From the NCBI RefSeq assembly GCF_002113885.1, contig NW_018408902.1:2329490-2393489 (forward strand): a stretch of DNA of 64,000 nt. Reading direction: 5' to 3'. This document shows positions 3,401 through 63,276 of this stretch, in pieces. Position 1 is the stretch's first letter. Every line of letters starts with the position of its first letter. The translations under genes were made by a program, and so were the position numbers. The notes beneath the pieces were generated by a model that saw nothing but the letters and a program-made list of their open reading frames with translations, ran no database searches and was not told the DNA's origin. The stretch is from Mizuhopecten yessoensis (Eukaryota).

Positions 3401-6193
3401 TGATTTCAGGCTATGTTTATGACGTAAAATGTTTTCAGCACAGAAGAAATATCTCCTGCAGAAGATATAAAATGACTCAATAATTCTCTATCGAGAAAGA
3501 ACTGATACTTAGAACAGACTCTGGAGAGATGAATTTATTATGACAAGATCAAATTTTAAGAAAATATAAAGCAACGTCAGCACACGAATTTAGAACTTCT
3601 GCAGTATCTATATGAAAGGACAACACCAGGAACAGAAGAGACGCTTAATCAAAACAAAACTACAACCCCCTCCCTAGAAAAGCCAGAAAGTGAAACCAAA
3701 TATCATTATTTATCTCCTTCAATATATTTATACCAACACCTCCCTGCACTCCGGTAATCAAAAATATATTGAGAAAATGTTTTTTTGATATTATGTAGCT
3801 AAAATATACATTAAGAGGATTAAAGTATGTATATTCAATAAGTATGCTTAATACCAGTATATGTGTTTTTAATGTTTAAAATGGTATTAAGTGTCAATTC
3901 ATGTTATGTATTGCACCCAGATGTTGCAAAGGTGTGTCATCATAAACACTAGTAAATATAGATTTTAAATCAAATTAAAATACAGGTAAAAATAAACCTA
4001 CCTAAAAAGTGATTTTAACCATCCTTAAAATACTACCTTAGAATCCAATAGTATTATTTAAGATAATACTATGCATTGCAAGTCGTTTTTAAAGAGGGAG
4101 AGGAAAACGTCACAACACACAGAAAAAACTAGGAACACAAAGATACACATTGGCCACCATACAAACTGTCAGGACAATAAAACAAAATGAAAGACACCGT
4201 AACCTCCTTCCACATAAAACATCAGATGCTCCAAATTACATACAAAAATATCGGCGTACTTAGATAATTATGACGTTAACGATCAATCAAAATGACTATC
4301 ATCATTTTATCACAAGTAAAATGGTTTGTCTTGTAATATAGAGCATTGACACAGAAAATAAGACAATAGGCAAAAACACAAACAAATCGTTGTTACAGAC
4401 AATAGACTAATGTTAGCACTCGCGTCAGTATGTTAAGGGTAGATAGTACCGTCCCTACACCTGTAACGTAGACAGGTAAGGATGGTGTCTGATACACTCA
4501 CCTGTATACTTGGGGTAGATAGTACCGTCCCTACACCTGTAACTTAGACAGGTGAGGATGGTGTCCGATACACTTACCTGCATAGTTGTGGTAGATAGTA
4601 CAGTCCCTACACCTGTTACTCAGACAGGTGAGGATGGTGTCTGATACACTCACCTGTGTATTTGGGGTGGATAGTACCGTCCCTACACCTGAAGCTCAGA
4701 CAGGTGAGGATGGTGTCTGATACACTCACCTGTATATTTGGGGTAGATAGTACCGTCCCTACACCTGTAACTTAGACAGGTGAGGAATGTGTCTGATACA
4801 CTCACCTGTATATTTGGTGGTAGATAGTACAGTCCCTACACCTGTAACTCAGACAGGTGAGGATGGTGTCTGATACACTCACCTGTATTTTTCGGGTAGA
4901 TAGTACCGGCCCTACACCTGTAACTCAGACAGGTGAGGATGGTGTCTGATACACTCACCTGTATATTTGGGGTAGATAGTTCCATCCCTACACCTGTAAC
5001 TCAGACAGGTGAAGAAGGTGTCTGATACACTCACCTGTATATTTGGGGTAGATGGTACCGGCCCTACACCTGTAACTCAGACAGGTGAGGAATGTGTCTG
5101 ATACACTCACCTGTATATTTGGGGTAGATAGTACCGTCCCTACTCCTGTAGTTCAGACAGGTGAGAATGGTATCCGATACACTCACCTGTATATTTGGGG
5201 TAGATAGTACCGTCCCTACACCTGTAGCTCAGACAGGTAAGGGTATCGTGGTTCCAGGTATCGCCATGGTTGTACTTTCCACATTTGGCTACAGAGATGG
5301 AAAAATACGCTTAATAGTTGCAGTGTGTTGTCAACATAACAAATCATAAAGATAAAAGTCCTTTATTCGTTTGATTGACAAAGGAGACCTTTTGTTTTAG
5401 TTCAGTTAGTTAAAACAGTATCCAGACAAATCTACCAATAGCAGACTTAACGTAAATAGTTTAACAGAATATGACAGAATAGATCAGAAGGTCGTTTTTC
5501 AAAATACATGAAGTATTTTATTTTGATACACATTCAAAATCTTGTGAATAATCTTCTCAATCTTGTGATTTCAGTTATAAAATATTCTGAAATATATATT
5601 CTAAATCGTTTGACTAGCATCCTTTGTTGATTTCTTATGATTAATATATCCTTAAAAATATTTCTTTTATCAGAACATTTGACCTTTTGCCTTTACACTT
5701 GCCATACATCATGCCTATCTAAAGGAACGCATTCCTATGAGAGCAAAGCCTTTACAGTATTATTTTATCAGTTTTTCGATTTCCAAATCCTTATATTGTC
5801 TTCATACATTGTAATTTGTGCTTTTGACAAAAAGCAATGTTATATTTTTTTATTTTTTTTTATATATAATATAAACACATTTTTAACTATCAATAAAAGA
5901 TTAAACATGAATACATTATAAGGTTTCTAGGATGTTTATGAATTTCTTAAAACCAAAAATTACTTTGAATAGAAATCAAAATATTAGATAAACATCACAA
6001 TTTTCTCTCAATAAAATCTTTACAACAGAAATCACAAAATGAAGAAAAAGATCACAAGATGTTCAGATATAGCAACCGTTGACACGCCATATTGGTCATC
6101 CATACATTTGTTCTTACCTTTAACTGAAGCCGAAGTGACGTAGGCTATCACTTGGACCAGAACACATGACACAAGCAAGTACCTCAGCATCAT
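374..6193 (-). CDS. Secreted Cys-rich modular protein (VWC/FN1-like 4-Cys+Trp modules); 5 coding exons seen, continues past the window start
   Basis: Exons 6118-6193, 5187-5288, 2313-2435, 1532-1687 and 374-484 join in frame through phase-1 introns. Hydrophobic signal-peptide-like N-terminus, then repeated C..C..W...C....C modules. Confidence 0.85.
1532..1687 (-). CDS. Cys-rich protein coding exon 4 (QCTVNTKGKNKCKPNGSEWKEGCDFKRCDV...INVKQ)
   Basis: cattgcag acceptor; 156 nt, phase 1-1 if the AG|gcacgt GC donor is used. Confidence 0.75.
2313..2435 (-). CDS. Cys-rich protein coding exon 3 (GCVKDDKCYDVNQKWKKDCSNFQCVSYTHGNMTVFETKLDM)
   Basis: atgatttag acceptor, gtgagt donor, 123 nt, phase 1-1. 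Confidence 0.85.
4436..5240 (-). repeat. 76-bp tandem array (~10 copies) of the 3' part of exon 5187-5288 plus its donor
   Basis: Period 76 bp; unit contains ...ccccaaatatacag|gtgagt...; the first copy overlaps the exon. Confidence 0.95.
5187..5288 (-). CDS. Cys-rich protein coding exon 2 (AKCGKYNHGDTWNHDTLTCLSYRCRDGTIYPKYT)
   Basis: ttttccatctctgtag acceptor, CAG|gtgagt donor, 102 nt, phase 1-1. Confidence 0.85.
6118..6193 (-). CDS. Cys-rich protein coding exon 1, signal peptide (MMLRYLLVSCVLVQVIAYVTSASVK)
   Basis: ATG follows an acceptor at 6203-6204; hydrophobic core; AAG|gtaaga donor. Confidence 0.85.
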
Positions 6194-7377
6194 GAAAATT
6201 ACCTGCAAATATCCAAAACAAAATAAATGAAGTATTGCGTTAGAGAAATATATGTGCACCATTTTAATGAATTGTTATTGGAGTAATTCTTGAAAAACTG
6301 TTTCACGTAAAAGAGGTATACATATTGCACTATGATTTAAATATTCTTAATTATCCACTTGACAGTTTTAGCAGAGGAAAATAAAAACAAAATAGAACAA
6401 AAAGGACTGGAGTCCTACCAACTTTTCAACAATTAATATTGATACATAATTGACATAAATTTCAGATGTATAAGATGCATAAGATAAGTAACACATACCA
6501 ATAATATATACTTCACATAAGGATTAAACGGCATTTTTACAAGTTTTTGTTGGTTATGAAAACACATCGGTTACATACATATTCCACGAAGCTTTGCGTT
6601 CATACCGGCATGAACAATGAAACCTGCCGTTCAGTCCTTATTTTACGTTCCAAAGTTTTAGTTGTTATTGACCTAATATATATATTACTTCATATTTGCA
6701 ATATTGAAGTGTCTTTGTCGTCAGCGCAAATGAGATTCCTAGAACAACCTAACGTCACCAACATGTTTGCCTCTAACGGTTGCATCATGTTATTCGAGGC
6801 GGGAGCTTCAATATGACGGTGACCAAATTGTGTTCATAGGTCTATGAACGACACAATTTCTTCTGGTTTTAGAGGACCTTGCAGTGGAAATGTAAATATT
6901 TGTGTATGATTATCTCTTTAACGGATAAATATACTTCCAATTGTGACCTAAAGCCTTGTTATGTTTTGGATCGACCTGTAAGAAACACTTCACATGTATA
7001 TATGATTACATTATTATAATTAAATAATCAACGCGCAACAGTTTTCGTATTAAATGTTTTCATGTGTTTATACTAATGACCCAAATATGGTATCTTGCAT
7101 TCTTTTATCTAATATGTCAAAGATAAAGAAAACAACAAAAGTAACGAAAATCTGGTCGTATTACCTCTTATGACACTAGATAATACATAATACAATATAT
7201 TATTTTATCAACTTTTCACGTTGTTAAATTCATGTCAATGTTTTCATAAAAGTCATATGTATGAATCACATATAACAATTTCATTTAGTTTAAATCTTCC
7301 AATAAAGATACATATCAAGACGATCTTTGATTGCTAATAAAGATGGTACTAAAACGTCAATAAGTGATATGTCTCAC

Positions 7378-7451: not shown

Positions 7452-9529
7452 CGAGAAAAATCGCGCGCCACTCGGCACTAAACCGCGCGGATTAATATTT
7501 TAGTACTTGCTGTGATGCTTCATTTATGGGGGCAGAGCTAACATTTTTTTGGAAACGACAGCTTTTCCTTTTGTGCATTGGAAATGCCACCCAATAAAGT
7601 GTACGTATTACTGTCGGAACTGACACGTTTTATGGTAGAGACGGAGCTGACAGCTGACGTGGAGAAAACACTATGTGGACAGTCCAGGAAATTGACATAA
7701 CTTATACTTTCGCTGCTACAGTATTAAATCTATATATATTTTCATAATGACCAGTTGTGTTTACGTGGAAAGAATGGAATTAACTTGAAAATAGAGTATT
7801 AAGCGTAAGGAGAAGATGAAAACCATTTGAGTGTGTTATGCAATAAATCTTTGGCAGGGCGATAAACATAGGATTAATATACTAAAAATGGTAGAGAATT
7901 ATTTGTGATGTCAAAGCTTTCAATAAAGGGCTTCTTGTTCGTTTTTTCACACATTCTCATCGGTAACACATTGCTAATGACCAAAACGCTTTTACATTGC
8001 GAATCGTTCAGAAGAAATATCACGGAAAAAATGTCGGTAAGTTAAAATACCTTGATCAGTCCTTGTACGTAGAAAGTTGATTGATGGGTCCTTTCTATAA
8101 ATATGAATAACTTGACGCAACGTTGATCAAAGTAATCGGTATCTCTTTCCTGTATTATATATTGTTGTTGTTTGCCATCTCTATGAGTGCGCGTTAACAA
8201 TATAAATATGTTCCAATTGAAATAAGACTTGTTTTTATTTGTTAAAACATCACACTCCTAGCAACTAATTGTGATACATTGCATTATAGATATGATAATT
8301 GTTATTTTTAACCTTTTAACTCAACTAAGCATAATTTATCATTCAATCGGTTAAAGCCCCTTTCATTAAAGCTTCGGGACGACAACCTTGGTAAGTCAAT
8401 ACGCAGATCAGCGTCATAGACGGCATGCAATACTGAGTAGTCAAAAGTTTTAACATGAGTTGTTTACGATAATAATGGTGATTTAATATTCTCCAGAAGA
8501 TCTTGATATTTTTTTTCGAAAAAAAAAAGAGTTTAAGCATACTTCGATACTGATTATGCAAGTAGTGATATCATTCAATTATGGATTTTGAAAAATTCGG
8601 AAGAACTTCTGGTGACATTGAATCTCCATCATTTTGTAAAACGGCTTCTTTTAAAACCTTTGGCGTAATAAACCACCGTTTTCAAATTTCAATTTTAATT
8701 ATGTGAATAGAATTTGTTTTTCTTTCTTTTAATAAACATCATACTGGTAAAAAGAATAATACACGTATGATCATATTGACGACATATTGAAGTTTTGGTC
8801 AACATCATTGTTGATTTCAGTCGACTTTCTGTGTTAGCGTACTACTTTTGGCCGATCATCATACAACTTAACTTATTCAAAGGTTTGTCTAGTCCTTCAA
8901 GTTTGTTTTAGTTACATTTTGATGTAACAAGAAATATATTTTAAAATTCCTTCCATCTTATTTATTCTCCAAAACTAGAAATGAATATACCAGTCTCCTT
9001 AATTTCGTTATCGTTAATATTCATTTCCTGAGTAGTAACATACTAACCTTCCCTGCTTTGAAATTCACATGTAAAAGTTGATTCGCTCTTAGTTCGTGAT
9101 ATGCTTTCGTGTTTGGTGTCTCCACCGTTCATGTTGGTAGTCTATACGTGTCTTGCCCTTGTGCATTTCGTTTTTGATTTTTTGAAATTCTATTTCACTC
9201 TAAAGTAGATAATAACAGCATTGTTTTCGCGACCATGCTTTGTACAATTGCCTGTCAGCAGTCGAAAACAACGAAACGGCACCGTAGTATGGAAATACAG
9301 AAGACCATTACGAAGGATGTACAGATCTTTCGTTCGAAACGAATTGTACCATATACATGTAAGACGACTTTTATCTGGTAATAGAATGATTTGTATTATG
9401 TTGATCGGGTCATTTCCTTTCATTGAAGCTCAAGTACTGGAAAGGTTTTTTAAACACTGAAAAGCGTTGCTCGTTAGTACATCAGTAGACAGTCAAAGTA
9501 GTTAGTCCAAATCAATGTAAAGATCTGAC

Positions 9530-10390
9530 AGAGCTAGATATTGGGATGCTCCAAATTGATCAGTTCAATTGCAAACACGTACGACATTCGCCTGCTCTGG
9601 GATGACGATCTATCGTCTGTGGTACCGTTTTAAGCACGTGAGTCAACAACTGACCGCCCATACTTGGCAGACCACGTGTCACCACCTGTCATGAGGACCG
9701 TCATGTACGACTACGCCATTTACGGGACAGGTCTCTTTCAGCCGCAGTCACCAAATGAACGTTGTTTCCTAGTCCCCGTATATATGTAAGTGGCCGAATC
9801 TTATGCAATCGTTTAAAATCCAATCGTTTGCAAGCGTGTCGGCCAATTTGAAAAGACCCTATAATTGCCTTAAGTTGGATCCATGAATCACGTTCTGTTC
9901 TCAGAAGACTCGCTTTTGTTTGAATTATGGTGATCACAGACTGTTGCAATCGCCATCGTGACAATTTCGCTGTTGGCGGCATCATGGTTTTGGTTGCAAT
10001 CACGCCAGGGAAGTTGTGTTGAAATTTGACTTGGTCCGTTACAGATATGAAATATTAAGATCTTTCGTTACCCCTACTTGCAGCGTCATGGAGCAGGTGC
10101 CATTTTCCAACAAGACAAAGCAACCCCACACACTAGTAAAGCCAGCAGGACATTTCTAAGAGAAAACAATTTCACTATGTTAGATGCCCTACGAAGTCCC
10201 CGGAACTGTCGCCAATAGAACATGTTTGGTATGTCATGGGCAAATTGAGTTCGACGCTACCGGATACAACCCTGTAACTTAGAAGAATTCGCTCTTGAAA
10301 TAGTTGATAGAGGAATGGAACAACATTTCCGTTACTATGCGACGGCGCATTAATGCGGTGATGTAGGCTAATGAAAACACAACCAATTTT
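9530..10390 (+). mobile_element. Decayed Tc1/mariner-like transposase remnant
   Basis: Frameshifted fragments GRPRVTT..EDRHVRLRHLRDR, ESR(F), IFQQDKATPHT and SPELSPIEHVW match Tc1-family motifs. Confidence 0.8.
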
Positions 10391-10890
10391 AAGTTTGTTA
10401 TTTATCATTATGTAACCCACCTGTCATTCAAGACCCGTAAAAGCATCCAGGTGTTACGGCATATTTCATCTAATAAATGAAAGCTGAACGTTACACACAC
10501 ACAGTGGTGATTCCACCTTTCCCTGCGAGTAAATATTTTCACGGTTTACGTCGTTACAGATGAACCGTGACCAGAACTGAAAAGATGAACATTGTTAATA
10601 ACTCGGATACAGAAGTAACAGTAATACCAACCACGAATGTTTGTTTAATTGTGTACGTAAAACACGTGATGGTATTGTAAAGCGTCATGATTCATATATA
10701 AGGACCCCTGTCACACTGCAGACAAAACGCCCAAGAGAATTACACTAGTTTCGTACGAATCGAAACAACCCGTGACTTTATGTTTGGATACAACTAAAGC
10801 GCGACTTTGCAAGGACGCTACCGTTAACCAATTAGTTCATCTGGTTAAAGCGACAGTAAAATGATCGGAGGTCAAGTGCTCGAGTTCCCA

Positions 10891-11126
10891 GGGCCGTATT
10901 AATGTAATGCTCAAGCTTATTTTCTTTTACCGCGTTTAAGTTAATAATGAAACCTTATTTTGTCAACGATTTGGAAAATATTTTAAAGAGATTCAAAGCC
11001 GAATACTGATTTCAATGTTTACAATGGAGTTTTTGATCGTTTGACACGATTAAGTGAGTTACAAGAAAGCTGGTTTGAGCACAGGATCCATGCTTGAGCA
11101 TAAGAGCAGTTTCATGAATACGGCCC
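10891..11126. mobile_element. MITE with GGGCCGTATT terminal inverted repeats, next to a tRNA-like SINE head
   Basis: gggccgtatt...aatacggccc ends, with subterminal atgctcaagc/gcttgagcat. Confidence 0.6.
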
Positions 11127-12584
11127 AAGTCTTTATCAGTTGCATTTTCAGAGATGATTTATCAAAGCTGTAGCCATGCTTTGAAAAATCATCTAGCATA
11201 CTATTATATAGTTACAGTCTTAGCAGTGGTATGGAGATACTTATACAGTATATAAAATAAAGTGATAAAAATCATTTTTATTCATATATTTTTTATTTAC
11301 ATTTCCGCTTTATACACTGTATTTGTAATACATTGTATATCAGAGTAAAGATTCACTCTTTCATACACAGACCTAATCCACATAAAGACCAAACAAACAC
11401 AGTTTGTGTGTCTTGTCCTGTAGCTCAACAACTGACTATAACGTTTCGATTTCTCAACTTTTAAATTACTAGTATCTCTTAATACATTTTCATGTATTTC
11501 CAAACCAGTTTTCTTCCTATACAAATGACATTACTGATTTTAAATATATTTTCTTGAAATTGGATTTTACAAAATAAGTACAAAGCAAAAATCATTTTTC
11601 AAATGATACGTTTCAATTCATTCTAAAACGAATTTGTGTCAGATCTAATGTTGTAATGAAAGTAGGTTTAGAAAGCTAATAAGGATCTTAAAAAAAAGGT
11701 ATCTGTTTATCTTAAGATTTAGGTCTATTTCAAATTTGTATCAGTAATGAAAGTAAAATATTATTTAACTTATAAAAGTTGTTGTTGTTTTACATATACA
11801 AACAAATAATATCTCTGGATCATGCTTCCCTACCGGTGATAAAAAATAACTACAACTGGTTCAGAGGTCAACAGGAAGAATCAAGACATGTTCATGGAAC
11901 TAGAAACACAGATAAGTTTCCTTTGGCCTTTTTCTACAGTTTTTTTATGACTTAGTCACAAGGAAGATTGTGCTAACATGAAAGACATATATAGATATAT
12001 AATTTTAAATACAAATCATTGTACACACGTGAAAAACTTGAGAAATCTTTCTTACATGAACAGGGTTGGTACAAATCTCTACATAGACAAAAACTGAATA
12101 TTACTTATAAATGAGTCAATTTCACGGAAATATGCAAACAAATCAAGCCCACATTCAATCTTTGTGAATTTCTCAACAATTTAATGTGTGCTGTATGTAA
12201 ATTTCAACTATCTGAAATGAATCCATTATGATAATGTAAAATATAAATGAAATTTTTACAATTTGTTTTACTAATTTTTAAGCTTTTATTAATTAAATGA
12301 CACATGAAAACACTCCACAAACCTTTTAATATTAGATTAACATATCATTACCTATAATAAAAGGTTTTTGCACAATTAATGCATTTGAGGAAAATGAATA
12401 TGATTTTCTCATGAAATGAAGTAATCAAGGTGCTCTTTATCTTGATCAAGTACTGATATGAATTCAGGATATTTTAATCAACAGGCACTGACAACCATTA
12501 TAAGCAGAATTATTGGAATTTTTTGTACACCATCGAAGGACTTAATCTGAATGCAGGGTTGCACAAGGACCAACCCAGTCACCA

Positions 12585-12658
12585 GAAGACTCATTTGAAC
12601 TCTTCCAATTCAAAGGTTGGAATAGTTCATTATGAAATTTCAAGGGTGAATGAGTTAA
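12585..12658. mobile_element. Partial copy of the ~85-bp TTAA-flanked MITE
   Basis: Near-identical to 62323-62408 but lacks one terminal repeat. Confidence 0.7.
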
Positions 12659-14463
12659 AATGGACAGATCAAAATCAGTATGAATATCATCCAGTCAAGT
12701 GTGGTAAGTGCAGCCATCTTTTTCCATAGTAGAGTGTCTGAACACTGAGTGAGTTACCATGACAATTCTGTATAAAAATGTGGTGCGCAGACCACGAAAT
12801 ACTAGCTTAGTAACAGGAAAACTGGACTTACGATTGTTGGAATGATGGAACTCAACGTTTTTTTCTTCCTTTTTAAAAGAATAAAATACTTAGTAACAAT
12901 GTTATACCGAATGATTTGGTTAAGTTTATGAACATTGCTTGGTGTATTTCATGTTTCCTGGTAAATTTCAAACCAAATTTTAAATCATTCCAAAAATGAT
13001 GGTAGATAATGCATCCTTCTTAATTTGTTTACTGACAACAAAGAATCCTTCTTTATGTGTTAATTGACAACAGCTGCAAGTACACTTGGAAATGTCATTA
13101 ATATAAATTCCAGGATGCTGAAAGCTGCATATCCATGTTTTTTAAGAGAAAAGGAATATAGATGCACAGACTGCAATAAGGTGTATGCACTTTTAAAACA
13201 CACATGTAAAAAGGAATGTTACTTGCATCTTATAAAAAAGGAATGTTACTTGCATCTTATGAAAAATAAATATTTGTGAACATAATAACTTAATCCTACA
13301 AAATCCCCATAATAAAACAAGACACAGAGGAACGTTGTCATCAAGACACCATAAATCTAAATTCTCCGTAATAAAACAAGACACAGAGGAACATTGTCAT
13401 CAAGACACCATAAATCTAAAATCTCTGAAGATCTTACATTTGGAACTCAATCATACTGAATTACCAATTCTTGTATACTTATTTCCCAATATTTACAATT
13501 TATAAAAAAAAGTATGAAGTGTCTCGTCTAACAAGAACGGTTCCACTGTACATATATCCAACACAACACAACACAGTGTTTACAAACAACCATAGTACTT
13601 CCATACACGTATATAAAATGTGTCTTATTCACAATCAACTTCAATAAAATGCTTAAAATGCACATGAATTTAATATACCTAAACAAACACTTGAGTGATT
13701 CTGAGCTTATTGCATCAAATAAAAACATTCAGATGATTAAGACTCCACAAAATGGAAAGACCCTGTACTGGAAGTCATTCATCAACAAAAAATCAGCAGA
13801 AGGAGAAATACTCATACCATTGTATTTAATCATTTCTTAATCGCCAAATATCTGCATGATATATGTTACAAAAAACAATACTGAAATACAAACAAGCATT
13901 GAATTAACTTTTTTCAACTGAGCAGTCAATCTAGAACTGTTCTCACTTCAACCTTGGAGCCAATGTTCTTTTAATGGAAAAGAACTGTTCTGGACTTTCA
14001 AACTATATTGTTTACCTCCAAACCAACCTTATCCATTGTATTCATTGTCAGAAACTGTGAAAGTGTAATGCCCACCATAACAAGTGCACTAATGGTTGCC
14101 ACGTCAACATTGACTTCATGACCTTGAAAATTCACACAATAACGTCACTCATACAAGCATTCAATACACAATTTCAAATCTCTGCCTGTACGCTACATAC
14201 GTCTTTATTCCTTCTCAGATTATCTTTCCTATTGATCTGAGATCAGAAATTTGGGAAACTTCTACATTTTGTATGTAACACTGCTGAAATATCAATAGCA
14301 CTATTTTCAAAGAGATTCAAAGGTAGTATACAAGTGAAATAATGATATCCTTAAAACTAAAGAGATTTGCAGTACGCAGTTACACAATATTGTAATACAT
14401 GAACAGCTTCTTCACGGTAGTCATCAGCAATCATGAAACGTTATGGCCATTCATGGTTTTGAC

Positions 14464-14665
14464 TTAGGATGCTTTGGCCGCTAACTTGGCTTGTTCTTCT
14501 AAAAATAACAGTTGATCAACAAGAAAACAGTCACTGGGATTTTTTACAAAATGTCGCAGTCCTGCCATGATGTCTTCTTCAGCCGATTTGTCGTTGTATC
14601 GTGCGTCCTTCAGATAACTGTACGCCTTTTCAAACGCATCTTTTCCGAGCATCTTCTCACATTCT
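14464..14665 (-). CDS. NEK11: NEK11 exon 14 (ECEKMLGK...AAKAS*)
   Basis: Acceptor with a U12-like branch site; TAA stop at 14464-14466. Confidence 0.9.
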
Positions 14666-17600
14666 CTGAGGATGTAGTTAAGAAACCAACAAGAAGCACT
14701 GTCGATAATAAATCATAGATTCTCACTTCACAAAGAAACCCTTTTCTATGACCAGCAATTTTTTCTAAGTTTGAGAAAAACATCAATTTATGAAAATAAT
14801 TGATTGGTTAATTTGAATTTTGACTCTATACATTTTGGTAAATTTGTTGGTTAATAATGAAATTAAGCCACTAAATTGACTTTAGCATCAACACACTAAA
14901 TTTTATTCAAGCATCCATTCACAAAATTTGATTCAACAAAATTTACTTTAAAAAAATACTTTGGTAAAATCTCGGGAAGTTAAAGTACTCCAGTAAATGT
15001 GTAAGGATACAATCTAAGGTTTTTAATCTTCTGTTCCCGGGCTACCGGGCCAAATGCACCAGCCTCAATGTCATCTGCCAAGGTCATTGTTGACTCTGAA
15101 ATAATAATTATGATGAGTGAAATACAGATATTTGTAAAATCAATTCCCCCCTAAAATTTATTAAAATTAAAATATTTACATTCTGTATGCTTCAACCCAT
15201 TGATGAAAATGACATTCATTTTTTGCATAACACAGGTGATCTCATCATCGCGTATTGATACGCTACAATGATTTAGCACAGGGCGTAATTGGTACACGTC
15301 CACCGTGAAACAGCCCTCGATGTAGTAGTTTTGTATGCTAATATGAGTTAACATTAGACATTATTGGCTTGATTTTGAGGTAAAGTATATGATAGTAGTG
15401 TAGGACTTGTAGAAATTCTATAAATTAGATTAACAAAATTGAACTATATTTTGTTTGTTTTGTTGTTTCGCTGTTGCTAGGACCCCCATTGAAAGTTTTA
15501 TATTTTCCCACGAAAACACGCTATTCTCTCTACTGTGTTGGCCCCATGTATAAAAAGAAAAAATACCTGTTTTTTTTTAGTTATGCTTGCATCAGAAAAA
15601 ACAAGAGGCCCAGGGGCCTTAATAGCTCACCTGGTATTTTATTTTTCAATTTAAAACCTGCTGAGTACCATTCAGGTTTATCAAAGGAGTACAAGTAACA
15701 AAGTTGCATCTTCCATTTATAAATATTCAATTCCCTTTGCCCAAAGATTCTCTAAAACAAGTTTGGTTAGGTTAAAATCCCTTCAACGGTACAGAAGGAG
15801 AAGGATCTTTAATGTTTTCCTCTATTTCCCCTAATGGGCCCCACTAATCTGCCCCAAAGAAGGGGAATCCACACACCTCAGTTTAAACAAAATTGATTCT
15901 TTTCTCCCTAAGCATGCTTCAGACTGCATTTGGTTTAAATCCCTTCACTTGTATAGTAGGAGAAAAAAAATCCTCTATTTCCCCTATTGGGCCCCGCTCC
16001 TATGCCGCCAGAAGGCCCACACCCTCCGTTTATACAAACTTGAGTCTCCTTTGTCCAAAGATGCTCTAGGACAAATTTGGTCAAAATCCTTCAATTGGTT
16101 GAGGAGAAGATTTTTAAAGATTTACCTATTTTCCCCTATTTGGCCCCGTCCCTCTGCCCCCAGGGGGACCATACCCTCCGTTTATACAAAACTGAGAACC
16201 CTTTGGCCAATGATGCTCCTGACCAAGCTTCAGACTGCATTTGGTTTAAATCCCTTCACTTGTATAGTAGGAGAGAAAAAATCCTCTACTTCCCCTATTT
16301 GGCCCCGCCCCTCTGCCCCCAAAGAGGCCACACCCTCCGTTTATACAAACTTGAGTCTCCTTTGTCCAAAGATGCTCTAGGACAAATTTGGTCAAAATCC
16401 TTCTATTGGTTGAGAAGAAGAAGATTTTTAAAGATTTACCTATTTTCCCCCTATTTGGCCCCGCCCCTCTGCCCCCAGGGGGTTATACCCTCCGTTTATA
16501 CAAAACTGAGAACCCTTTGGCCAATGATGCTCCTGACCAAATTTGGTCAAAATCCTCTGAGCCATTCAGGACAAGTAGTATTTTAAAGGAAAAAGTTGCC
16601 GGACGCCGGACGCTGCACCATGGGATAAGCTCACTTGGCCCTTCGGGCCAGGTCAGCTAAAAATGTAAATATAAGGAATGAAATTTGTTTTTTCAACATT
16701 TATGAGGTCATAACAACATTGGCTTTCTGGCCATATTTACCAAGAATCGCTAACCCGACTCATGGAATATGTCCAGAAAGTCAATGTTTTTATGACCTCA
16801 TGAATGTGGAAAAAATAAATTGCATTCCTTAAATTATGCAATTCCGTCTTTTCGTATTGAAGAGTTATCTGCTCTTGTGAGCAGGTATTGATTGTTATGT
16901 CATTGTTTGTGTGAGAAAATAACGTCATTTTCTCAAAAATTTACTCTCACAAACAAATGACGTAACAATCAATTCCTGCTCACAAGAGCCGATAACTCTG
17001 CAATACAAAAAGACATAATGCATTCCTCTATTTACACAAAAGATTCTTTTCTTTATTTTCAAACTTATAATGATAAATTTTGCAACCAAATTTTGAAAAA
17101 TGTCTCGCTTTAAAAACATACAAGCCAACAATCCATCTCACTTATGTTCTTGACTCATTAGCATCAATTATTACCTACGAAACTGGTTTAATATTAAATC
17201 TACTTCAAAATATTATTTAGCAACATTGATTACATTAAATTCAAAGAAAACCCATCTTTCTTGCATGTAACCACAAAAACAACCTCATTTATTCCTTTGA
17301 TGTGAATGTTGTCCTATTAAATAGTCAGCTCATGAATTTACCAGAGAAAGTTTGACTATCATTATAGTCATTGTTATAGATACACCTTGAAGACATGTTA
17401 CCATGGATACCTACCAGCATCATCGCCCTGTTCTAACACATCCTGGAGACAGTTGAAGAAGGAATCCTCATCGTTAGAATGACCAATCACAGTGTCACTT
17501 CCTTTTGATTTGACAGTCAAGTTTTTGGCCTTGAGCGTGCTATCATTTTTTTCAACTACGGTCAACTGATTTTCGTCTTCAGAGTTCGAGTCCGAGTCAG

Positions 17601-20600
17601 AATTCTGAGTAAAGTCTTCATACTGGCTATAATAAGTGTCAGCAAGCTCTGGGCTCTCTGGTATACCTGTGAGTTGATTGGTCAATTCAGAAGTCAGTAC
17701 AATCATCGATTTACATACGTAGGAAACAAAATGATGTTCAATTTATAATTTGATTTTTTTTTACAATAACAAAGAATAGCATCTAGTGCAAGTAGCTAAA
17801 TTTGAAAATCTGATGTAAATCCTAATTAATTAGTTAAAATATCATGTTCATATATTTAATGATATCAATTCCAAGATCTGTATCTATATTTCAAGCTTCA
17901 TAGCTTTTTAATTTTTGGAAACTTAAGCTTAATGCAAAATTAAACGTAAACACTGATGGGCAAGTCCAAACTCAATATATCGTTTCCCAACTTTTGTCAT
18001 GGGTGACATGTAAGTCAGCAATGATCTGTCATGAAAACACAGGGAACAATTTAAAAAAAACACTGAAAATCAGAGAGAATCGAAATGAAGCATTCACATG
18101 TGTTATGGGTGGCAGTGAGGTTAGTTTTTGTAAGCAACACCGAAGGAGAAGTGTATCGGTATACTGTATACCAGCCATGATGAGCAACACTGGTAATGAA
18201 CCTATAAATATTGGTTGAACAGTCAAATACTAAAACAAAACATTTCAAAGTGATGAAGTATACATCCTTTCTCCAGCCTCTTCCTATGTAAGACACACAT
18301 CCCATGTGGAACACCCATGTAGGACATTTTGTGTCTCGCATGACCACACACACTGATCTCTAGTTCGGAAACTACATTGTTTCTAAATACTAGCTACAAT
18401 TTTTTTTAAAGGAAATAAAATTTTAAATATTCAATATCTTGTTGAGTGATGGTCTTAAACATTACATCATCTTAATGGGACATATCATTATCAAATTGTC
18501 ATTTTGATCAGCTGAGGATTTCTCTCGTAAAAACACGGATACTACATTGTTTTCTAAATACTAGCTACAAAATGTGTAAGTAGAAATAAAGTTTAAATCT
18601 GTTTAACATCTTGTCAAATGATGTTCTTAAACATTACATCATCTTTATGTGATGTATTATTTTCAAATTGCCATTTTGATCTGTCGAATAATATCTTCCG
18701 CCAAAACACTGTCAGCAACTGATTTTGTCTTATTGGAGTGAATAATTGTGAACCCATAATCCCCGACAAACGTTGATATTGGAAATAAACAAAGGTCCAT
18801 AACTCTGTTTAGTGGAAATAACGGGTATGTTAAATGAGCAAGGAAGTCCGATTTCTTGACACAATCAGATTTTTTAAATTTTAAAATGATATTATACATT
18901 GACCATCTATCTCAATTCACATACAAAGGAATTTTTTAATTCTAATAAACCTATCTACAAGGATTCTACATACAATATTGATTGATGCACTATGTATATG
19001 TATATATATATATATCTTTTTTGGTAAATGAATTTCTTTTCATTTCTCATGAAAAGAAATATGAGTAAATCTTACGTTTGTTGTCTGTAAAGAAAAGCAA
19101 ATAACGGTGTCAGTTTAACTCAACATGAACTATATAACTTGTGTAAAAAATTTCCCAAATTAAATTTGTTGTTCAAGCAAAAGTATTTTTGGGCACAGTT
19201 CAATCAAATTTTATTTACCTTGCTTGGTTCTTTATCTATTAGGTCACAACCAAAGGAAATGACTGATACCTCTTACAAGAATAAGTGAAACATGAACTAC
19301 CCAATATTTTAATTTTGTCATACAGACTTAAAGCCTTCATTTCTGAACTATATACCTGATTTTTTAAACAAAGATTATGACCACCCCAGAATATTAAAGG
19401 GAAGTGTTTCACAAACTTAATACCTAGATTTTTAACCAAAGATTCTTACCATCTCTGAAGTCTAAAGATGAATTTTTCACATCGTAAACCATTTTATCTC
19501 GTAAAGGTGTAATAGGTCTTTCGTCTGGACCCAAGATGACTGACGATAATTGAGCTTGGTCTACTGTTTTTGATGGTCTGAATTTTAATGTTTCCCGTTC
19601 ATCTTCAGCATCATCTGCTAGATATCTAGGTACTGCAAAACGACGAAGGAAAAAAAATATGTTCACATTTGTTTCCTTAACTTCCAGATCATTTTGTCAT
19701 TAATAGGTCTAGTTAATTTCCCATTCATCTGTTTTTCTAAAACAGTATTTAGTGGGCGTTGATGGAACAAGACTGCTAGTCAAAAAAGTCGGAATCACAT
19801 TTGTCTGATCATTGTTTTGCATGAAGGATTGGCTAAACGAATTCCACAAAAATATAGAAATCTTCAACCTACAAATGGTCATCCATTTTCATTAACTTCG
19901 ATACGAGTTCATTCAATGGAAACAAAAAAGATGATGAATATATAAATTACAGGTGAATGTTGTGTGGGAATGATAGAGAACCAGGGTACTCTCTATCTTA
20001 AACTGTTAGTAACATGTGATGGGGTGCACCTTGTCTACACTATGCTGTGAACAAATCTACTTATACTGCCATTACCTTCCATATTGATTGGTCAGTAATA
20101 TATGTGTATATTAAACAATATTCTAATTTCTTTCATACAGAAACTCTAAATTTTAAAAAGTTAACAGAACTTCATTATCTAAGCTTTCAGATATATTTTT
20201 CTTTCATATGAATTAATATTATGTCTTCTAGATGTACTTTTTTCTCTGTCTTCCAGATAAACTTTCCTCCTTTTACCTTTAAGAAATATTTTCTTTTCTT
20301 CGTCTTGTAGATATACTTTCTTCTCTTTATCTTTTAGATATGCTTTCTTTCCTTAGTGTTTAAGATATATCTTCTTTTCTGATAGTTTATATGATTATTC
20401 AATATAACTTGATGGCAGAATTGTATAACTTCAAGCTTAAAGCTGTTAAACTACTTAATTAGTCAATTGAAAGAACAAAGAACATGTTTCTCTCTCAATA
20501 TTTTAACTACCACACAAAGCACAAACACAAGGTAATGAGAGAGAGATAAGAGAGAACGCTCGGAGTTGTCTGTCCCTACCTGGTGCTGTTTTGAAATGAG

Positions 20601-23600
20601 CTGGAGTGACGGTTATTGCGGGAGGACTCTCTGGCTCCGATGATGTGGAGGAATTCCTACGGGGAGCTCCTTCAAATATTTTCCCCTCCCCTGCACCTCC
20701 CTGCCAGGCTGGAACCTGGAGAAGATGCAAAAGTAAGTCAGTGATTTATATGACATACCGTATCTAAGACAGAAGTAGATCAGCAACTTACATTATGTTT
20801 AGATCTACTTTGTAAGTATCGTAGATGTGTTTGCCAATAGATTTTGAAAGAGGCAAATGAGGATTCGGTATGTACACAATAAACATTAACTTAGATAAAT
20901 AAACAATCTTATCTTTTTGTATTTCATAGGAAGTTGATAAATACAAGAAATTCTCTCATTTAGTATTTTTTTTTTCGCTGAGAGATATTCAAAGATTTGC
21001 TTTCATAATGTTCTAATTTTTATAGAAATTTTATCTGTTTGTCCAACCACACACTGAACAGTATTAATTTAATTAACTTTTATAACTAAACGTGGGCAAC
21101 TCATTTAACGTAAGCTGGCCATCAATTGTCTCCAGATACTTACTGTTGTTTTATTGAGGTGACTCTTTATCTTCGATTTCCTCTCCTGGTTTGCTATAAG
21201 TTGTACTTTGGCGACCTCCCTGTGATAAAAAAAAATCATCAATGATATTCTTTTTACTAATATCATTGTACCATTATTCTCTCCGAGTCTAAATACCTTA
21301 AAATCTCCCCTTTATTACCAACCACATGACTGTTAGAGATTGTCTCCCCTTTATTACCAACCACACAGCTGTGCGGACAGATTATCTCCCCTTTATTTCC
21401 CCTTAAAATTTAAAAAGTTCCACAAAATTTGTAATGACTATGTCTTGAGGCTTTTTACACAGGCAATATGTTACAGAAAGAAAATAGCAAGTACTTATAC
21501 AATAATCTTTTCATTTAAAAGAGATATATAATAATCCTTTGCAGACGGTCAAAATTTGGTAGAAAGGGACTGGCCCCTGTGATCTTACTTGAGTCTCAGA
21601 GCATCCTCGTCTGCCTGAGCCATCTTTCTCAACCTCATCCTCTCTCGTGGGGGCAGGTTTTTGTACTTGACCTCCTCCTCAGTCAATCGCAGATCACTCA
21701 GGTGTGATTTCTCACGTCTACAGAGCAAAGTTGACAATTGGGATATTTCACGACTTACACTCAAAAAGAGACATTGAATTGATAGAATATAAGCTTTCCC
21801 CATGTATAGGGGTAAAGAAGTACGAAATATCTCCCTAAGAATTATGATAAAATATGCATAAAACTTGTATTGAGGGTTCAAAAAGGAATTTATATTACCC
21901 CTTCAGAAGGATGGAGAGGGTATGTAGAATGGCCTGACATTTGAGAAGGATTAGGAGGTTTTATGTAATTTATATACATTTAATATCATAAATTACCCAA
22001 ACTTACAATAATCGTGCTATCTCCTCAGCCTCTGTGCTGGCATTGTCTTGATTACGAGCTTGGTAATCCTTAGACATTTTCTGAAGAAGGAACAAAAGAT
22101 AAATGTTTTAAAATATTTTCTGAAGGCTGACCTAACTTAATATTCATCATTATCTTTCTCAATGAAAATTTTGAAATTTTAAAGATTTTTTCTTATTTGA
22201 GATTTATTTTACCTTTTATAAAGGAAGGCCAACTTTAAGCTTAACTATCCTCATACCACTACCAAAATCTGATGAAAGTTGCAATTATAATTGGAAACTT
22301 TTCTCGCCAGCATGTAATAGCATTCATAAATTATTCCTGAAAAGAAATCCCAACGTTAGGAAAGTTTTATGAAAAATGAATCTGCCTGAAGCTGATTTTG
22401 CAAATCACAGTTGAAATAGCAGGATGGTACAGAAGTATTTTGTGATAAATGAATGCTATTGGATTTAATTTGGCAAACCTAAAGCAGTGCTCTTTTTCTA
22501 ATTCTGTTATTTTGTGACAAATAACTAACAATAAATCATTAAGAATCATGTGTGCTTCTTTCACTCAAGAACTTAATCTTATTTATATTTATGTGTTAAT
22601 CAACCTTGTTCTATGTTGAGGAACTGCAAACAGGTTCAAATAGTTGAAACAGTTGCAAAGCACTAAGTGACTATAGCTTATACATTGTATGTGGCCAGAG
22701 GGAGACATCTACCTGGGGTGGTGATAAGTGGGAGACCACAGGCCTGTTCTATACGTGGACCAACCAGTGTGTCTATTAAAACGTAATACTTCAGGGATAA
22801 AGCCTGACATGCTACTATTAATACGGGCAATGAAAGTCTTTCTCAAGGCTTGCAAGACAACAACATCAAATACAAGATCCATCCCTATTTCATAAATAAA
22901 CATTTCTGGTCCAACTGTTTGATATGGGATAAACACAAATGCAACCTCTGTACTCTCAGAATGTGGTTGGTAATATTAAAAGGGGAGACACTCTGTACTC
23001 ACAGCTATGTGTGTTTTTCAGAGGTCTCTACACAACTATAAAAAGACAATTGCAATGTAATGCCCACAATGAACGGTTTACAAACTACACAGTAAAATAA
23101 AAGTCGCCCTCATCTCGTTTTTGCCATGTAAAATGAAAAAAATAATACCGCCCTGCCGCATCTCTTTTGAATAAAATTGGCCTGAGAACCAAGTAATTAA
23201 TTTTATTTGGCCTTACAGCTATATGTGTTTGATAATAAAGGGGAGACACTCTCTACCAACAGCTATGTGTGTTTGGTAATAAAGGGGAGACACTCTGTAC
23301 CAACAGCTGTGTGTTTGGTAATAAAGGGGAGACAATCTGTACTGACTGCTATATGTGGTTGGTAATAAAGGGGAGACACTCTGTACTGACAGCTATGTGG
23401 TTGGTAATAAAGGGGAGATAATCTGTACTTACAGCTATGTGGTTGGTAATAAAGGGGAGACAATCTGTACTGACAGCTATATGTGGTTGGTAATAAAGGG
23501 GAGACACTCTGTACCAACAGCTATATGTGGTTGGTAATAAAGGGGAGACACTCTGTACTGACTGCTATATGTGGTTGGTAATAAAGGGGAGACAATCTGT

Positions 23601-26600
23601 ACTGACTGCTATATGTGGTTGGTAATAAAGGGGAGACACTCTGTACCAACAGCTATGTGTGTTTGGTAATAAAAAGGAGACAATCTTTACTTACAGCAAT
23701 ATGTGGTTGGTAATAAAGGGGAGATAATCTGTACCCACAGCTATGTGTTTGGTAAAAAAGGGGAGACACTCTGTACTGACAGCTATGTGTGGTTGGTAAT
23801 AAAGGGGAGACACTCTGTACCAACAGCTGTGTGTTTGGTAATAAAGGGGAGACAATCTGTACTGACAGCTAAAAGCGGTTGGTAATAAAGGGGAGACACT
23901 CTGTACTGACAGCTATGTGGTTGGTAATAAAGGGGAGATAATCTGTACCCACAGCTATGTGGTTGGTAAAAAAGGGGAAATAATCTGTACTTATAGCTAT
24001 ATGGTTGGTAATAAAGGGGAGACAATCTGTACTTACAGCTATATGGTTGGCTATAAGAGGTTCCTTCAATAAGTCAGTCCCAGATGGTCGTTTTGCTGGG
24101 TCTTTACTTAACATTCTGGAAACAGGCAAAGATATAACAAGTTCAGGGAAAACCGTATATATTTATATTCATATGATAAAGACATTTTCCTGGAATATTT
24201 TGAAAAGTAACAAAGTCTGAAACTTCATGATATGTGTTCTTATGTGATCATGAAATCCACCTTAACAAGATGTTTATGTTAAAAGATGCAATACATTTAC
24301 TCAAACTGAACTTAAACTACTTAAAATTATGGTTGACAAAATATGTCGACAAATTTTTGAAATATTTTTCGATCAAATATTTTCCATTTTATGTATAGCT
24401 CTAGAATGTGAACATGATATGTTTTATAACAAACAAATACATTTTTTCCATACTTACAACACCATTATCCGATTAAGATCTTTGGAGAACCTATCAGGAA
24501 GTTTGGGTAGTTCTCCCTCAACAATTTTATACATGACCCCCATCAAACTGGTGCCGTCAAATGCATGGCTCAGGGTACACATCTCATACAGGATACAGCC
24601 TATAGACCTGAAAATAGTGGTATACATCTGATACAGGATGCAGCCTATAGACCTGAAAATAGTGGAATACATCTGATACAGTATACAGCCTATAGACCTG
24701 AAAATAGTGGGATACATCTCATACAGGATACAGCCTAGAGACCTGAAAATAGTGGTATACATCTTACACAGGATACAGCCTATAGACCTGAAACTAGTGG
24801 TATACATCTGATACAGGATACAGCTTATAGACCTGAAAATAGTGGTATACATCTGATACGGGATACAGCCTATAGACCTGAAAATAGTGGCATACATCTG
24901 ATACAGGATCCAGCCTATAGACCTGAAAATAGTGGCATACATCTGATACAGGATCCAGCCTATAGACCTGAAAATAGTGGGATACATCTCATACAGGATA
25001 CAGCCTAGAGACCTGAAAATAGTGGAATACATTCGATACAGAATACAGCCTATGGACCTGAAAATAGTGTTATACATCTGATACAGGATACAGCCTATGG
25101 ACCTGAAAATAGTGGTATACATCTGATCCAGGATACAGCCTATAGACCTGAAAATAGAGGTATACATCTCATACAGGATACAGCCTAGAGACCTGAAAAT
25201 AGTGGAATACATTCGATACAGAATACAGCCTATGGACCTGAAAATAGTGGTATACATCTTACACAGGATACAGCCTATAGACCTGAAAATAGTGGTATAC
25301 ATCTGATACAGTATACAGCCTATGGACCTGAAAATAGTGGTATACATCTGATACAGGATACAGCCTATAGTCCTTCACTCGTATTGATGGGAGGGACAGC
25401 TCTGTCCTTCACTCGTATTTATGGGAGGGACAGCTCTGTCCTTCACTCGTAATTTTGGGAGAAATCTATGAACTTACCATATGTCTGACTTGGAGTTGTA
25501 GCCCTCATGTTTGAGAACCTCAGGACTCATGTAGTATGGAGTTCCAGTGAAGGTTGATGCTAGGTCTGTGGTTCCCATCAATATCCGGGATATTCCAAAA
25601 TCACCAATTTTAATCATATTTTTCTTAAGGAAAATATTTCTGGAAGAAATGGGGGAAAAGAATTATGAATTTCAATTTGATACTTTGATATCACTTAGAC
25701 CATGATTGACCTACTTTTATGGTCTTATTACCTGATATACATGGTTTTGTAGTTTGATTGGTTTGGTTTAATTTTATTTAACGTCCTATTAACAGCTTAG
25801 ATCATTTAAGGAAGTGCCTCAATGTGTTCTAGTGTATGCGTTCTTGTGTGTGTGTTTGCAGGAGACGGGGTATATTGATGTGGTTTGAGGTCTGAATTAT
25901 ATTAACATTAATCTGGTTATTTAGGTCTTTGTGACCTACATTTACGTTGATTTGAAGTCATTGTGACCTGGTTTTGCCATCTTTATGGCCTATATTTAAC
26001 TAGTTTTGAGGTCACTGTGACCTCTATATTGACCTGGTTTTGAGGTAACTGTGACCTATATATTAACCTGGTTTTGAGGTCTCTGTGACCTATATATTTA
26101 CCTGGTTTATAGGTCTCTGACCTATATTTGATTAGTTTTGAGGTCAATGTGACCTATATTTACCTGGTTTTGAGGTCTCTGTGTAATACCCTGCGTGTGT
26201 GCATGTAGTGGACGGCAAGTACAAGCTGGACAAACCAGTCCAGCACCGTTTTCTCATCAAACAGTTTCTTGTTCTTCTTTAAATCATTGATCTTCATGTC
26301 CAAATCTCCTCCCTACAACGGCAACATAGGTAATCAACTAGCCATGATAGGTCACTGTTAGCCGTGATAGGTCACTGTTAGCCGTGATAGGTCACTGTTA
26401 GCCGTGATAGGTCACTGTTAACCGTGATAGGTCACTGTTAGCCATGATAGGTCACTGTTAGCCATGATAGGTCACTTTTAGCCATGATAGATCACTGTTA
26501 GCCATGATAGGTCACTGTTAGCCATGATAGGTCACTGTTAGCCATGATAGGTCACTGTTAGCCATCAACATTAACATTGTAATGACAATACTTACAGTAT

Positions 26601-29600: not shown

Positions 29601-32600
29601 CACGTAATTGTATGCATAGATGGGAAATGATCTGACTGAGATCATGGCTTTTAGTAAACGCGGTTCCAGAAGTTTCTTAAACTCTGGTTTTGTACAGACA
29701 TTCAGCTAAACGGCTAAGGATTATCCTTTTATAGTATATGTTAAAATTTAAAAAGCTTTATTGCAAATATAAAAGAAAACATGCCCCATATTTAAATTCT
29801 CAGTATAAAACTTGCTTTGTGTTTAATGTACAGATTTTGTTGTATCAGTGAAAGCCACTGACAACGTATCACTGGCTACAACAATGGAAGGTAGACAACG
29901 TATCACTGGCTACATCAATGGAAGGTTAAATCACCTGTTAAACTTCAATTGTTGTATGATCTTATTTAACATTTCATCAAGGTAAAGCCAATTAAAGCCG
30001 TGTACACTACCATATATCGTAAATGACATAATAAGGCATTGGTAAATATCAACACATTTTTCCTCTAACAAAATACAAATGAAATGATCAGAAAAACCTG
30101 TTTTTGTTTTATGTCACGTACCGGTTAATATCTTGTTTTTCTCTGACAAATGAAAAGTGATATTAACCGAAATCTACTGTACCTCGTAATTTAACGATTT
30201 TCCAAACAATCCGAGACATTAAAATTAAAGTTATCATTGTCTTTGTGTACAATGCCATTTTGGTAGCGAAAGTTGTCTAAACTAACAAAACCAACTGCAT
30301 GACATCCGGAAATTATGATATAATCTGAAATAGAAAACTCTGCAATTTTTTAAGTTCCTGGATGGGGTATCCTTATTAGAACAACCCATTCTGATTGATA
30401 TGTCTCGCCTGTGCCCCTCTTTGACCATCAATGCACATATCAGAGAAACTAACTTAAATGCAAAAACTTAATGTTGATAGAGATGCTGACAAAGTCAATG
30501 GACCATAAAAGGTAGGCCCCATCCAGCATTTGATGCATGGGTTCAGGTGTACTACCTAAGATGCATATATGGCCTAAGTTTGGTTGGTGTAGCACTTATA
30601 TTTTCAGTGAAACTAATTTAAACGCAAAAACTGAATGTTGATGCCGCCGCCGTTGCAGGAAAAGCAACACCCGAGTCTCACTTCCGACTCTTCATCGCAG
30701 CGAGACAAACAGTGTTCTTTTTAAGTCAAATATGGTTACCCTATTATGAAATGTGCAGTACATTGTACAGCTTTGAGTACTATATATACATACAGTAGTT
30801 TAGTTGTATAAAAGATATGGTATACTGTAAAATCGCAAATTTTTCTGGTGTGGAAATGCATGTTCACATATTTTTTACATTGAGTAAATATACACTAAAA
30901 TATTCACATGCAAATATAAATTTACAGATTGTAGATACATGTATATAGGCACAGATTTCTGAAGCATTGCAGTCAATGCAAAAAATTCCAGGCTACGTTT
31001 AAAGAGTCAAGAAAATTTTCACATTTACAGTAAGATATTAGTTAGAATCTGTTCAAATACAAATTTAACAAGGTTACCGCGAGCGGTATATAATACACCC
31101 GTCACACATTGAATGAGCAGTTGTTTGTATGATTGAAATATATGAAGTATTTGTGAGTAATTGATATTAAAAGAGAAATCATTCAACATAACTGGTAGAT
31201 CAATGAGTGCAATACAACATCATGGAACGCATGCATCGCATTAATGAAACCAAGGGNNNNNNNNNNNNNNNNNNNNNNNNNNNNNNNNNNNNNNNNNNNN
31301 NNNNNNNNNNNNNNNNNNNNNNNNNNNNNNNNNNNNNNNNNNNNNNNNNNNNNNNNNNNNNNNNNNNNNNNNNNNNNNNNNNNNNNNNNNNNNNNNNNNN
31401 NNNNNNNNNNNNNNNNNNNNNNNNNNNNNNNNNNNNNNNNNNNNNNNNNNNNNNNNNNNNNNNNNNNNNNNNNNNNNNNNNNNNNNNNNNNNNNNNNNNN
31501 NNNNNNNNNNNNNNNNNNNNNNNNNNNNNNNNNNNNNNNNNNNNNNNNNNNNNNNNNNNNNNNNNNNNNNNNNNNNNNNNNNNNNNNNNNNNNNNNNNNN
31601 NNNNNNNNNNNNNNNNNNNNNNNNNNNNNNNNNNNNNNNNNNNNNNNNNNNNNNNNNNNNNNNNNNNNNNNNNNNNNNNNNNNNNNNNNNNNNNNNNNNN
31701 NNNNNNNNNNNNNNNNNNNNNNNNNNNNNNNNNNNNNNNNNNNNNNNNNNNNNNNNNNNNNNNNNNNNNNNNNNNNNNNNNNNNNNNNNNNNNNNNNNNN
31801 NNNNNCGCCCTCCCGCCCGCTCACGTGATAACATAATACGTTCCCGTCTTCGACGGGCGTATAAAAATTGAGCAAGATGCCATAAGCAGAGACAAAGGAA
31901 GGACTACTCATTCCAGCTCTGCATGTATATAATTGTAATGTTCAAACACCATAAAAAAAATTAAAAAAAAAGATTATTTCACACTTCCCATGTATAATCT
32001 ATTGATAGGTTTAAAAGATTTTTTTCCCCCAAGTCCATCATTAATGGGAACTTTAAATCCTGAATAGAAAAAAATTACCATATATTCAATAAAAGGAATA
32101 TTCAGCATAGCAAACAGTATATTGAAATTTATACACTTTTAGTAATCAGCTCAAAATATTCAAGGACATTGTGTGTTCCCTATATATGTATTAAAGAGCT
32201 AAACATAATTAAGGTGCAAGATATATATAGATATTAAAATTCTACAAAGTTTTTATAAAGCCTTATTTCCTTCCAAAACTACTGAAATTTAAACTAATAC
32301 TGTGAACTTAATTAAAAGATATCATCAGACAGTGTACAATTTGAAAATAAAATACATACAAAATTGTTTATGAAATGTCACCTATAGCTATCATTTAGCA
32401 ATACTAAACAGAATCAACACTTTTGACAAAATAATTCAGGATGATAAAACTTAACTGCTCAGGCAGAATTTCAATAGATCAACCTCTGATACATAGACAT
32501 GAAAAAATAGCCTCCTTATTTCACTCAACCTTTCCCTTCACCATGAGCTCTCCTTGCAGACATTCATCAGCCATTTTGTGATTTTTGAATTTGGGGGTCA

Positions 32601-44439: not shown

Positions 44440-63276
<18,837 letters not shown>

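Follow-up and report, generated by a model that had tools for sequence, protein, structure and literature searches.

Minisatellites that span an exon/intron boundary, known as 'mirage' minisatellites, have already been described in the Adh3 and globin genes of amphioxus and in intron 7 of human F7. The name was given in work on amphioxus Adh3 (Canestro et al. 2002), as cited in PMC3087553. In the amphioxus globin genes BflGb6 and BflGb9 (Ebner et al. 2010) mirages occur at both 5' and 3' boundaries, many of the copied AG and GT dinucleotides are kept, and regular splicing is undisturbed (PMC3087553). The BflGb6 mirage is of the acceptor type, its unit combining the 3' end of an intron with the 5' part of an exon, and the amphioxus mirages show concerted evolution within a cluster (PMC3087553).

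In human F7, the donor junction of intron 7 (IVS7) lies within the first monomer of a 37-bp VNTR (Borensztajn et al. 2006, PMC1557585). The exon-adjacent site alone is used; the 5 to 9 identical pseudo-sites are silent and become functional once the authentic site is inactivated, and the winner was explained by 5'-to-3' scanning (PMC1557585). Engineered splice-site duplications (Lang and Spritz 1983; Kuhne et al. 1983) gave contradictory outcomes, as cited in PMC1557585. A C. elegans minisatellite paper was considered as a further parallel and set aside, being concerned with regulatory motifs and not with copied junctions.

The 45-bp array analysed here, in intron 4 of the NEK11 gene of the scallop Mizuhopecten yessoensis, belongs to this class: its unit contains the boundary, its terminal unit is the authentic junction, and assembled RNA contigs show regular splicing with the other repeats silent. 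As in amphioxus, where both acceptor- and donor-type arrays occur, the unit spans an exon/intron boundary. The hosts differ, belonging to Cephalochordata and Mollusca, respectively, and so do the dimensions, the globin mirages having 3-6 copies of 150-160 bp and the NEK11 array 17 copies of 45 bp. The NEK11 unit is in frame and stop-free, unlike the amphioxus mirages, while length polymorphism has been shown in amphioxus. In both F7 and NEK11 the used site is the exon-adjacent copy; however, F7 repeats a donor, of which the most upstream copy wins, whereas NEK11 repeats an acceptor, of which the most downstream copy wins. The engineered duplications share with NEK11 the competition of identical splice sites in cis, but they involved two copies in reporter genes, whereas NEK11 presents a natural 17-fold competition with one clear winner. 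The new element is that four scallop species have junction arrays at corresponding NEK11 junctions, whether by recurrence or by persistence.

The NEK11 locus and its 45-bp array

The window, meaning the whole 64-kb stretch of DNA that was analysed, carries on its minus strand a gene that, judged by sequence, is the NEK11 orthologue. Exon 4 matches Pfam Pkinase (E=6e-14), and when its peptide was compared with 1.8 billion representative proteins the closest full-length matches and the 90% clusters were those named Nek11 or Nek11-like by their sources, in agreement with the NEK11 assignment made earlier from the letters alone. Exons were searched individually against proteins, and not as a joined spliced model. 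A tblastn search with the Pecten maximus NEK11 protein placed 14 exons in the window, the C-terminus included, at about 90-96% identity. The 90% cluster of this protein includes the NEK11-like isoforms X1 and X2 of M. yessoensis, which are 98-100% identical to the window exons; the window therefore represents either the NEK11 locus of the Yesso scallop or an extremely similar sequence. Two further features of the gene are an ordinary cassette exon of 61 aa (window 19448-19633), present in X1 (667 aa) and missing from X2 (606 aa), and a run of N in intron 1 (31257-31805).

Exon 4 ends with ...SDIW at 25478, followed by the donor GTAAGT, and the interruption falls within the kinase core, at helix alphaF. 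For the 45-bp array within the intron that follows (Table 1), TRF reported 17.8 copies with 90% matches, 0% indels and a score of 1315. Read on the minus strand, the unit consists of the final 11 nt of intron 4 and the initial 34 nt of exon 5, which corrects the sequence-only reading, where it had been divided into 29 nt of exon and 16 nt of intron. The other claims of that reading about the layout of the array were confirmed by a script and by TRF: there are 17 TTTCAG/GT sites (the slash marks the junction), all intact and in frame, whose first exonic bases (25327, 25282 and so on to 24607) are exactly 45 nt apart, and the first of them lies 150 nt from the donor at 25478. The proposed open reading frame of 297 aa (24454-25347, minus strand) also exists and remains open through the array in the kinase frame, with 16 copies of a 15-aa unit running into the exon 5 peptide. 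Pfam matches on this frame were scattered, with no stretch passing alone, and were read as repeat noise.

The final unit of the array adjoins exon 5 and is the authentic junction, its first exonic base at 24607 being continuous with the body of the exon. Unit-by-unit listing distinguished 13 unit types among the 17 units, in the order ABCDEFCGHHIJBGKLM, and the repeated types C, G, B and H point to probable recent exchanges; array copy number and unit order are taken from the assembly sequence alone. Compared with their own consensus, the 16 decoy units contain 38 differences, corresponding to 20 distinct variants. The array is a single locus: a search of the 988-Mb assembly found the unit nowhere outside it.

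Table 1. Exons, tandem arrays and splice sites around intron 4 of NEK11 (window coordinates)
Feature	Position	Strand	Evidence
NEK11 exon 3, ends HRDLKT	26164..26312 (26164..26314 in RNA contigs)	-	RNA joints, tblastn
34 bp x 5.9 array, exon 3 end + donor; used donor is the first, exon-adjacent one only (exon end 26164)	25990..26183	-	TRF, RNA joints
NEK11 exon 4 (DFG to DIW), donor after 25478; single copy in genome	25478..25639	-	Pfam Pkinase, RNA joints, own-genome search
Intron 4, 870 nt, nearly all tandem repeat	24608..25477	-	sequence, TRF, RNA joints
34-bp x 2.7 repeat between donor and 45-bp array; not junction-derived	25370..25461	-	sequence + TRF
45-bp junction-derived ('mirage') minisatellite	24574..25374	-	TRF + unit-by-unit listing
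16 decoy acceptors (TTTCAG/GT), first exonic bases every 45 nt; 0 seen joined to exon 4	24652..25327	-	site script + RNA contigs
NEK11 exon 5; acceptor 24607 is the last array unit and the sole acceptor seen used	24458..24607	-	RNA joints, tblastn of scallop NEK11 proteins
NEK11 exon 6	24037..24115	-	RNA joints, tblastn
44 bp x 19 array, exon 6 end + donor; used donor is the first only (exon end 24037); most decoys weakened	23215..24045	-	TRF, RNA joints

Splicing across the array

RNA evidence was obtained from the Logan contigs of four RNA or RNA-like runs (X15, X16, X17 and X19), belonging to four studies, on window 23900-26400. In each run one long contig (1743-4358 nt, depth 11-31) joins exons 6, 5, 4 and 3, and these four contigs contain no mismatch within the exons. 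The joints are the same in all four runs (24115/24458, 24607/25478 and 25639/26164), with CT..AC ends on the plus strand, and the joint across the array (24605 to 25476, cut +2) skips exactly 870 nt, 24608-25477, in every one of them. Exon 4 is present in a single copy in the genome, as the own-genome search found, and therefore the joined contigs represent RNA, a retrocopy being ruled out as their origin.

Among the assembled contigs of the four studies, from which assembly drops rare variants, none of the 16 upstream acceptors is listed as joined to exon 4. For the same reason decoys may still be used below the level that the assembler keeps. A decoy-spliced mRNA would be in frame and without a premature stop, and therefore nonsense-mediated decay would not hide it if it were common. 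A few short contigs do lie on the array itself (24683-24764 in X15 and 25106-25180 in X19), with a depth of 2-3 versus 11-31 for the mRNA, and are probably unspliced RNA.

The annotated proteins agree with the contigs: the canonical junction DIW/SIGCILYEMCTL is found in both M. yessoensis isoforms, X1 and X2, and this peptide is identical in the Pecten, Ylistrum and Argopecten orthologues. The decoy peptide was found in 0 proteins among candidates of 163-520 aa drawn from 5.8 billion, a weak test in that full-length ladder isoforms would exceed this range. An alternative 3' splice-site ladder would place more than one acceptor in mature mRNA, and the contigs and annotated isoforms gave only one. 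The 25478-to-24607 junction, which the sequence-only reading had named as the result that, if found alone and with no intermediates or copy-number effect, would refute its proposal, is indeed the only joint across the array in the four RNA data sets at contig level. Strict choice of the last site, one of three options offered by the sequence-only reading, is thus upheld as the outcome. The contigs show the 16 upstream acceptors to be silent decoys and use of the last site to be dominant, with minor use of the others possible.

Choice of the last acceptor

The array is most probably a tolerated, essentially neutral 'mirage' minisatellite with silent decoys, and not an isoform ladder. It would have started with a tandem duplication across the boundary of intron 4 and exon 5 of scallop NEK11 and may later have grown to about 17 units by slippage or unequal exchange. 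With the last unit alone continuous with the rest of exon 5, the spliceosome would take that acceptor and leave the upstream 16 copies inside the intron as silent decoys, the array persisting as a tolerated, essentially neutral by-product of a minisatellite-rich genome.

All 17 sites have sequence in common from about -45 to +34, so that site strength cannot decide between them and the choice must depend on sequence further downstream. The true site is followed by the body of the exon, with its putative enhancers, and, 150 nt away, by the exon 5 donor, which would act by cross-exon definition, and each decoy is followed by another pyrimidine tract and AG. Exon definition may well be the cause of last-site choice. 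A rule under which the winner is the copy joined to the complete exon agrees with cross-exon definition and disagrees with a 5'-to-3' first-site rule or with pairing of the donor with its nearest acceptor. A 'first site' rule of this kind cannot explain the choice in NEK11, since it is the acceptor that is repeated and the most downstream copy that wins. RNA structure masking the decoys was also considered and rejected, because the fold of 24560-25500 (minus strand) is less stable than those of shuffled sequences (z +1.62).

The locus therefore offers 17 acceptors in natural competition, alike over the shared span, in frame and invisible to nonsense-mediated decay, of which the exon-adjacent one alone is used. 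This outcome speaks against the 'first site reached' rule and against simple intron definition in scallop, and favours downstream exon context. A ladder of isoforms in the kinase core would have been remarkable; the findings indicate silent decoys instead.

Donor arrays of the same gene

Two further arrays of the gene copy donor junctions, those of exons 3 and 6 (Table 1), and in the RNA contigs they follow the mirror rule, the first, exon-adjacent donor being the one used. The decoy donors of the exon 6 array vary at +3/+4, with GTCAGT in eight, GTTGGT in five, GTGGGT in two and GTAAGT in only two, and most of them are therefore weakened, unlike the acceptor decoys of intron 4.

The units of the exon 3 donor array contain a palindrome, AGGTCAnnnTGACCT (at window 25923-26155), made up of two AGGTCA half-sites in inverted orientation, an arrangement known from steroid-receptor response elements. 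Two perfect and four one-mismatch matches to it occur in the window, against 0.17 expected. Its 13-nt core was found in the same intron of the other scallops, eight times in Pecten (10286-10616), three times in Ylistrum (7254-7330) and four times in Argopecten (14483-14590), each in the numbering of the species' own locus. The palindrome could be a hairpin favouring slippage or a candidate binding site.

Junction arrays in four scallops

Three other scallops, Pecten maximus, Ylistrum balloti and Argopecten irradians, supplied NEK11 loci for comparison with the M. yessoensis window; neutral divergence between the species amounts to 0.58-1.15 substitutions per 4-fold site. In all four, intron 4 has an array derived from one or other of the intron's splice junctions, of the acceptor type in Mizuhopecten and Ylistrum and of the donor type in Pecten and Argopecten. 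The Ylistrum array (34 bp x 38; Ylistrum locus 8090-9381) stands before exon 5, and its out-of-frame unit combines the intron end with an exon 5 start from which 12 internal nucleotides are deleted. CAG/GT is kept in 28 of its units and the AG is lost in about nine, including the two that adjoin the true acceptor, which is preceded by an AG-free stretch of about 100 nt. In P. maximus, intron 4 contains the exon 4 end and donor as 44 bp x 84 with 57 intact ATG/GTAGGT sites (Pecten locus 11012-14734), and in A. irradians the same junction is present as 55 bp x 8.6 with eight intact copies (Argopecten locus 15224-15698); the annotated proteins of both species use the first donor copy. All four species likewise have the donor arrays of exons 3 and 6, and 10 non-junction arrays of NEK11 had no counterpart among the compared scallops. 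Outside this set, P. maximus has a 59-bp x 16.9 acceptor array running into the start of NEK11 exon 2 (Pecten locus 8707-9704), which has no window counterpart.

Arrays at the same three NEK11 junctions in four scallops are not simply predicted by pure neutrality, and in this respect the comparison runs against the neutral reading. The number of junction-spanning arrays in the gene (three) does not differ significantly from the 1.29 expected by chance (P=0.14), and the sharing of arrays is easier to detect at junctions, because the exon part of the unit is constrained. Given this P value and the detection bias, the recurrence is reported as unexplained and not as proof of function. It is conceivable, if on balance unlikely, that scallop junction minisatellites are not random by-products and reflect either mutation directed at splice junctions or selective retention of decoys beside real sites. 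If so, the 17 acceptors would also be a natural assay in which sequence beyond +34 decides 3' splice-site choice.

A more specific proposal is that the decoy array is selected in cis, either by receiving U2AF/U2 as a sink or landing pad and so setting how fast or how efficiently intron 4 is removed, or by supplying spare acceptors as a backup for the authentic one, with no ladder proteins made. Besides the recurrence at such evolutionary distances and the sharing of the exon 3 and exon 6 arrays but not of the non-junction arrays, this is favoured by the F7 pseudo-sites, which work once the authentic site is lost (PMC1557585), and by the 9-nt acceptor core TTTCAG/GTC, which is free of all 20 distinct variants (P=0.0115). 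The variant-free core hints weakly at constraint, or at conversion with the functional unit as donor; an attempt to find selection on the acceptor core in other arrays was not relied on, the HSP-based variability profiles being biased at unit ends. Against selection in cis, unit length (45, 34, 44 and 55 bp), copy number and junction type all differ among the species, and many decoys elsewhere are degenerate, with the AG-less units in Ylistrum, exon 3 decoys without GT in Pecten and the weakened decoys of exon 6. The chance expectation and the greater detectability of shared junction arrays count against it as well, and a function in cis is considered improbable.

Reading frame and variation of the array

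The sequence-only reading had asked whether the lack of stops and indels exceeds neutral expectation, and it does not. Of the 135 single-nucleotide changes possible in the consensus unit, only 6 introduce a stop into the kinase frame, giving a probability of no stop of 0.40 for the 20 distinct variants and of 0.18 for all 38 differences; the consensus unit is open in two of the three frames, and most other arrays of the window also have 0% indels. Among the decoy variants five are synonymous and 15 non-synonymous (22% synonymous expected), and the codon changes include Cys to Trp, Leu to Pro and Tyr to Asp. Divergence within the array is 5%, as against at least 0.58 substitutions per 4-fold site between species. 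Eight junction arrays were compared in the four species (periods 45, 34, 44, 55, 59, 32-34 and 41-44), and only in the NEK11 45-bp array is the period divisible by three. Neutral drift is thus compatible with all three features of the decoy array: its open frame, its lack of indels and its 5:15 ratio.

These figures bear on the most striking suggestion of the sequence-only reading, a ladder of length isoforms that titrates active kinase. In a minor form of it, low-level use of upstream acceptors would add 15 aa per unit after DIW (alphaF), and the resulting inactive kinase would lower the dose of active NEK11. All 16 decoys are intact, in frame and stop-free, rare junctions could escape the contigs, and low-depth RNA contigs do lie on the array. 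However, no decoy joint appeared in the four studies, no annotated isoform or database protein in the 163-520 aa range contains the decoy peptide, the decoy codons drift neutrally, and the 34-nt unit of the Ylistrum counterpart is out of frame. The ladder as originally proposed is not borne out, and even its minor form is very unlikely.

Assembly and recursive splicing

A further explanation is that assembly or gap closing in a scaffold-level draft created the array or gave it its 17 units. The assembly consists of 82,659 contigs with N gaps, the share of words sampled from the stretch that DNA runs contain is just 0.37-0.43, and a mis-assembled mirage in a draft genome has been noted for amphioxus (PMC3087553). 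Yet the variant units form a consistent pattern without indels, array units are matched, with a few differences, by RNA contigs from other individuals, three other scallops with chromosome-level assemblies have homologous or analogous arrays, and a low word share is expected from the bubble-popped contigs of a variant-rich repeat. An artefact is thus a highly improbable source of the array. Recursive splicing, the remaining option of the sequence-only reading, would remove the array stepwise at the AG/GT present in every unit, and can be dismissed as barely credible: the regenerated donors (GTCTAT, GTCCAT and GTCTCT) are weak and match GTRAGT poorly, no intermediates were seen among the contigs, and intron 4 has just 870 nt, whereas introns known to need this process are far longer.

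Other repeats of the window

The 45-bp array of intron 4 is one of about 20 separate minisatellites in the 64-kb window, mostly without indels. For two of them (4437-5242 and 59641-61838) no abutting exon was seen in the window. In intron 8, a 39-bp x 2.4 repeat (window 21303-21397) resembles the unit of the exon 6 donor array, of which the sequence-only reading had taken it to be an inverted copy, and matches a Pecten array at Pecten-locus 16134-16808. Intron 3 contains a stretch of about 80 nt (window 25755-25825) at which RNA contig depth reaches thousands, with many different flanks. A search of this stretch against Rfam gave no match; with at least 1567 candidate copies in the genome, it is a dispersed repeat.
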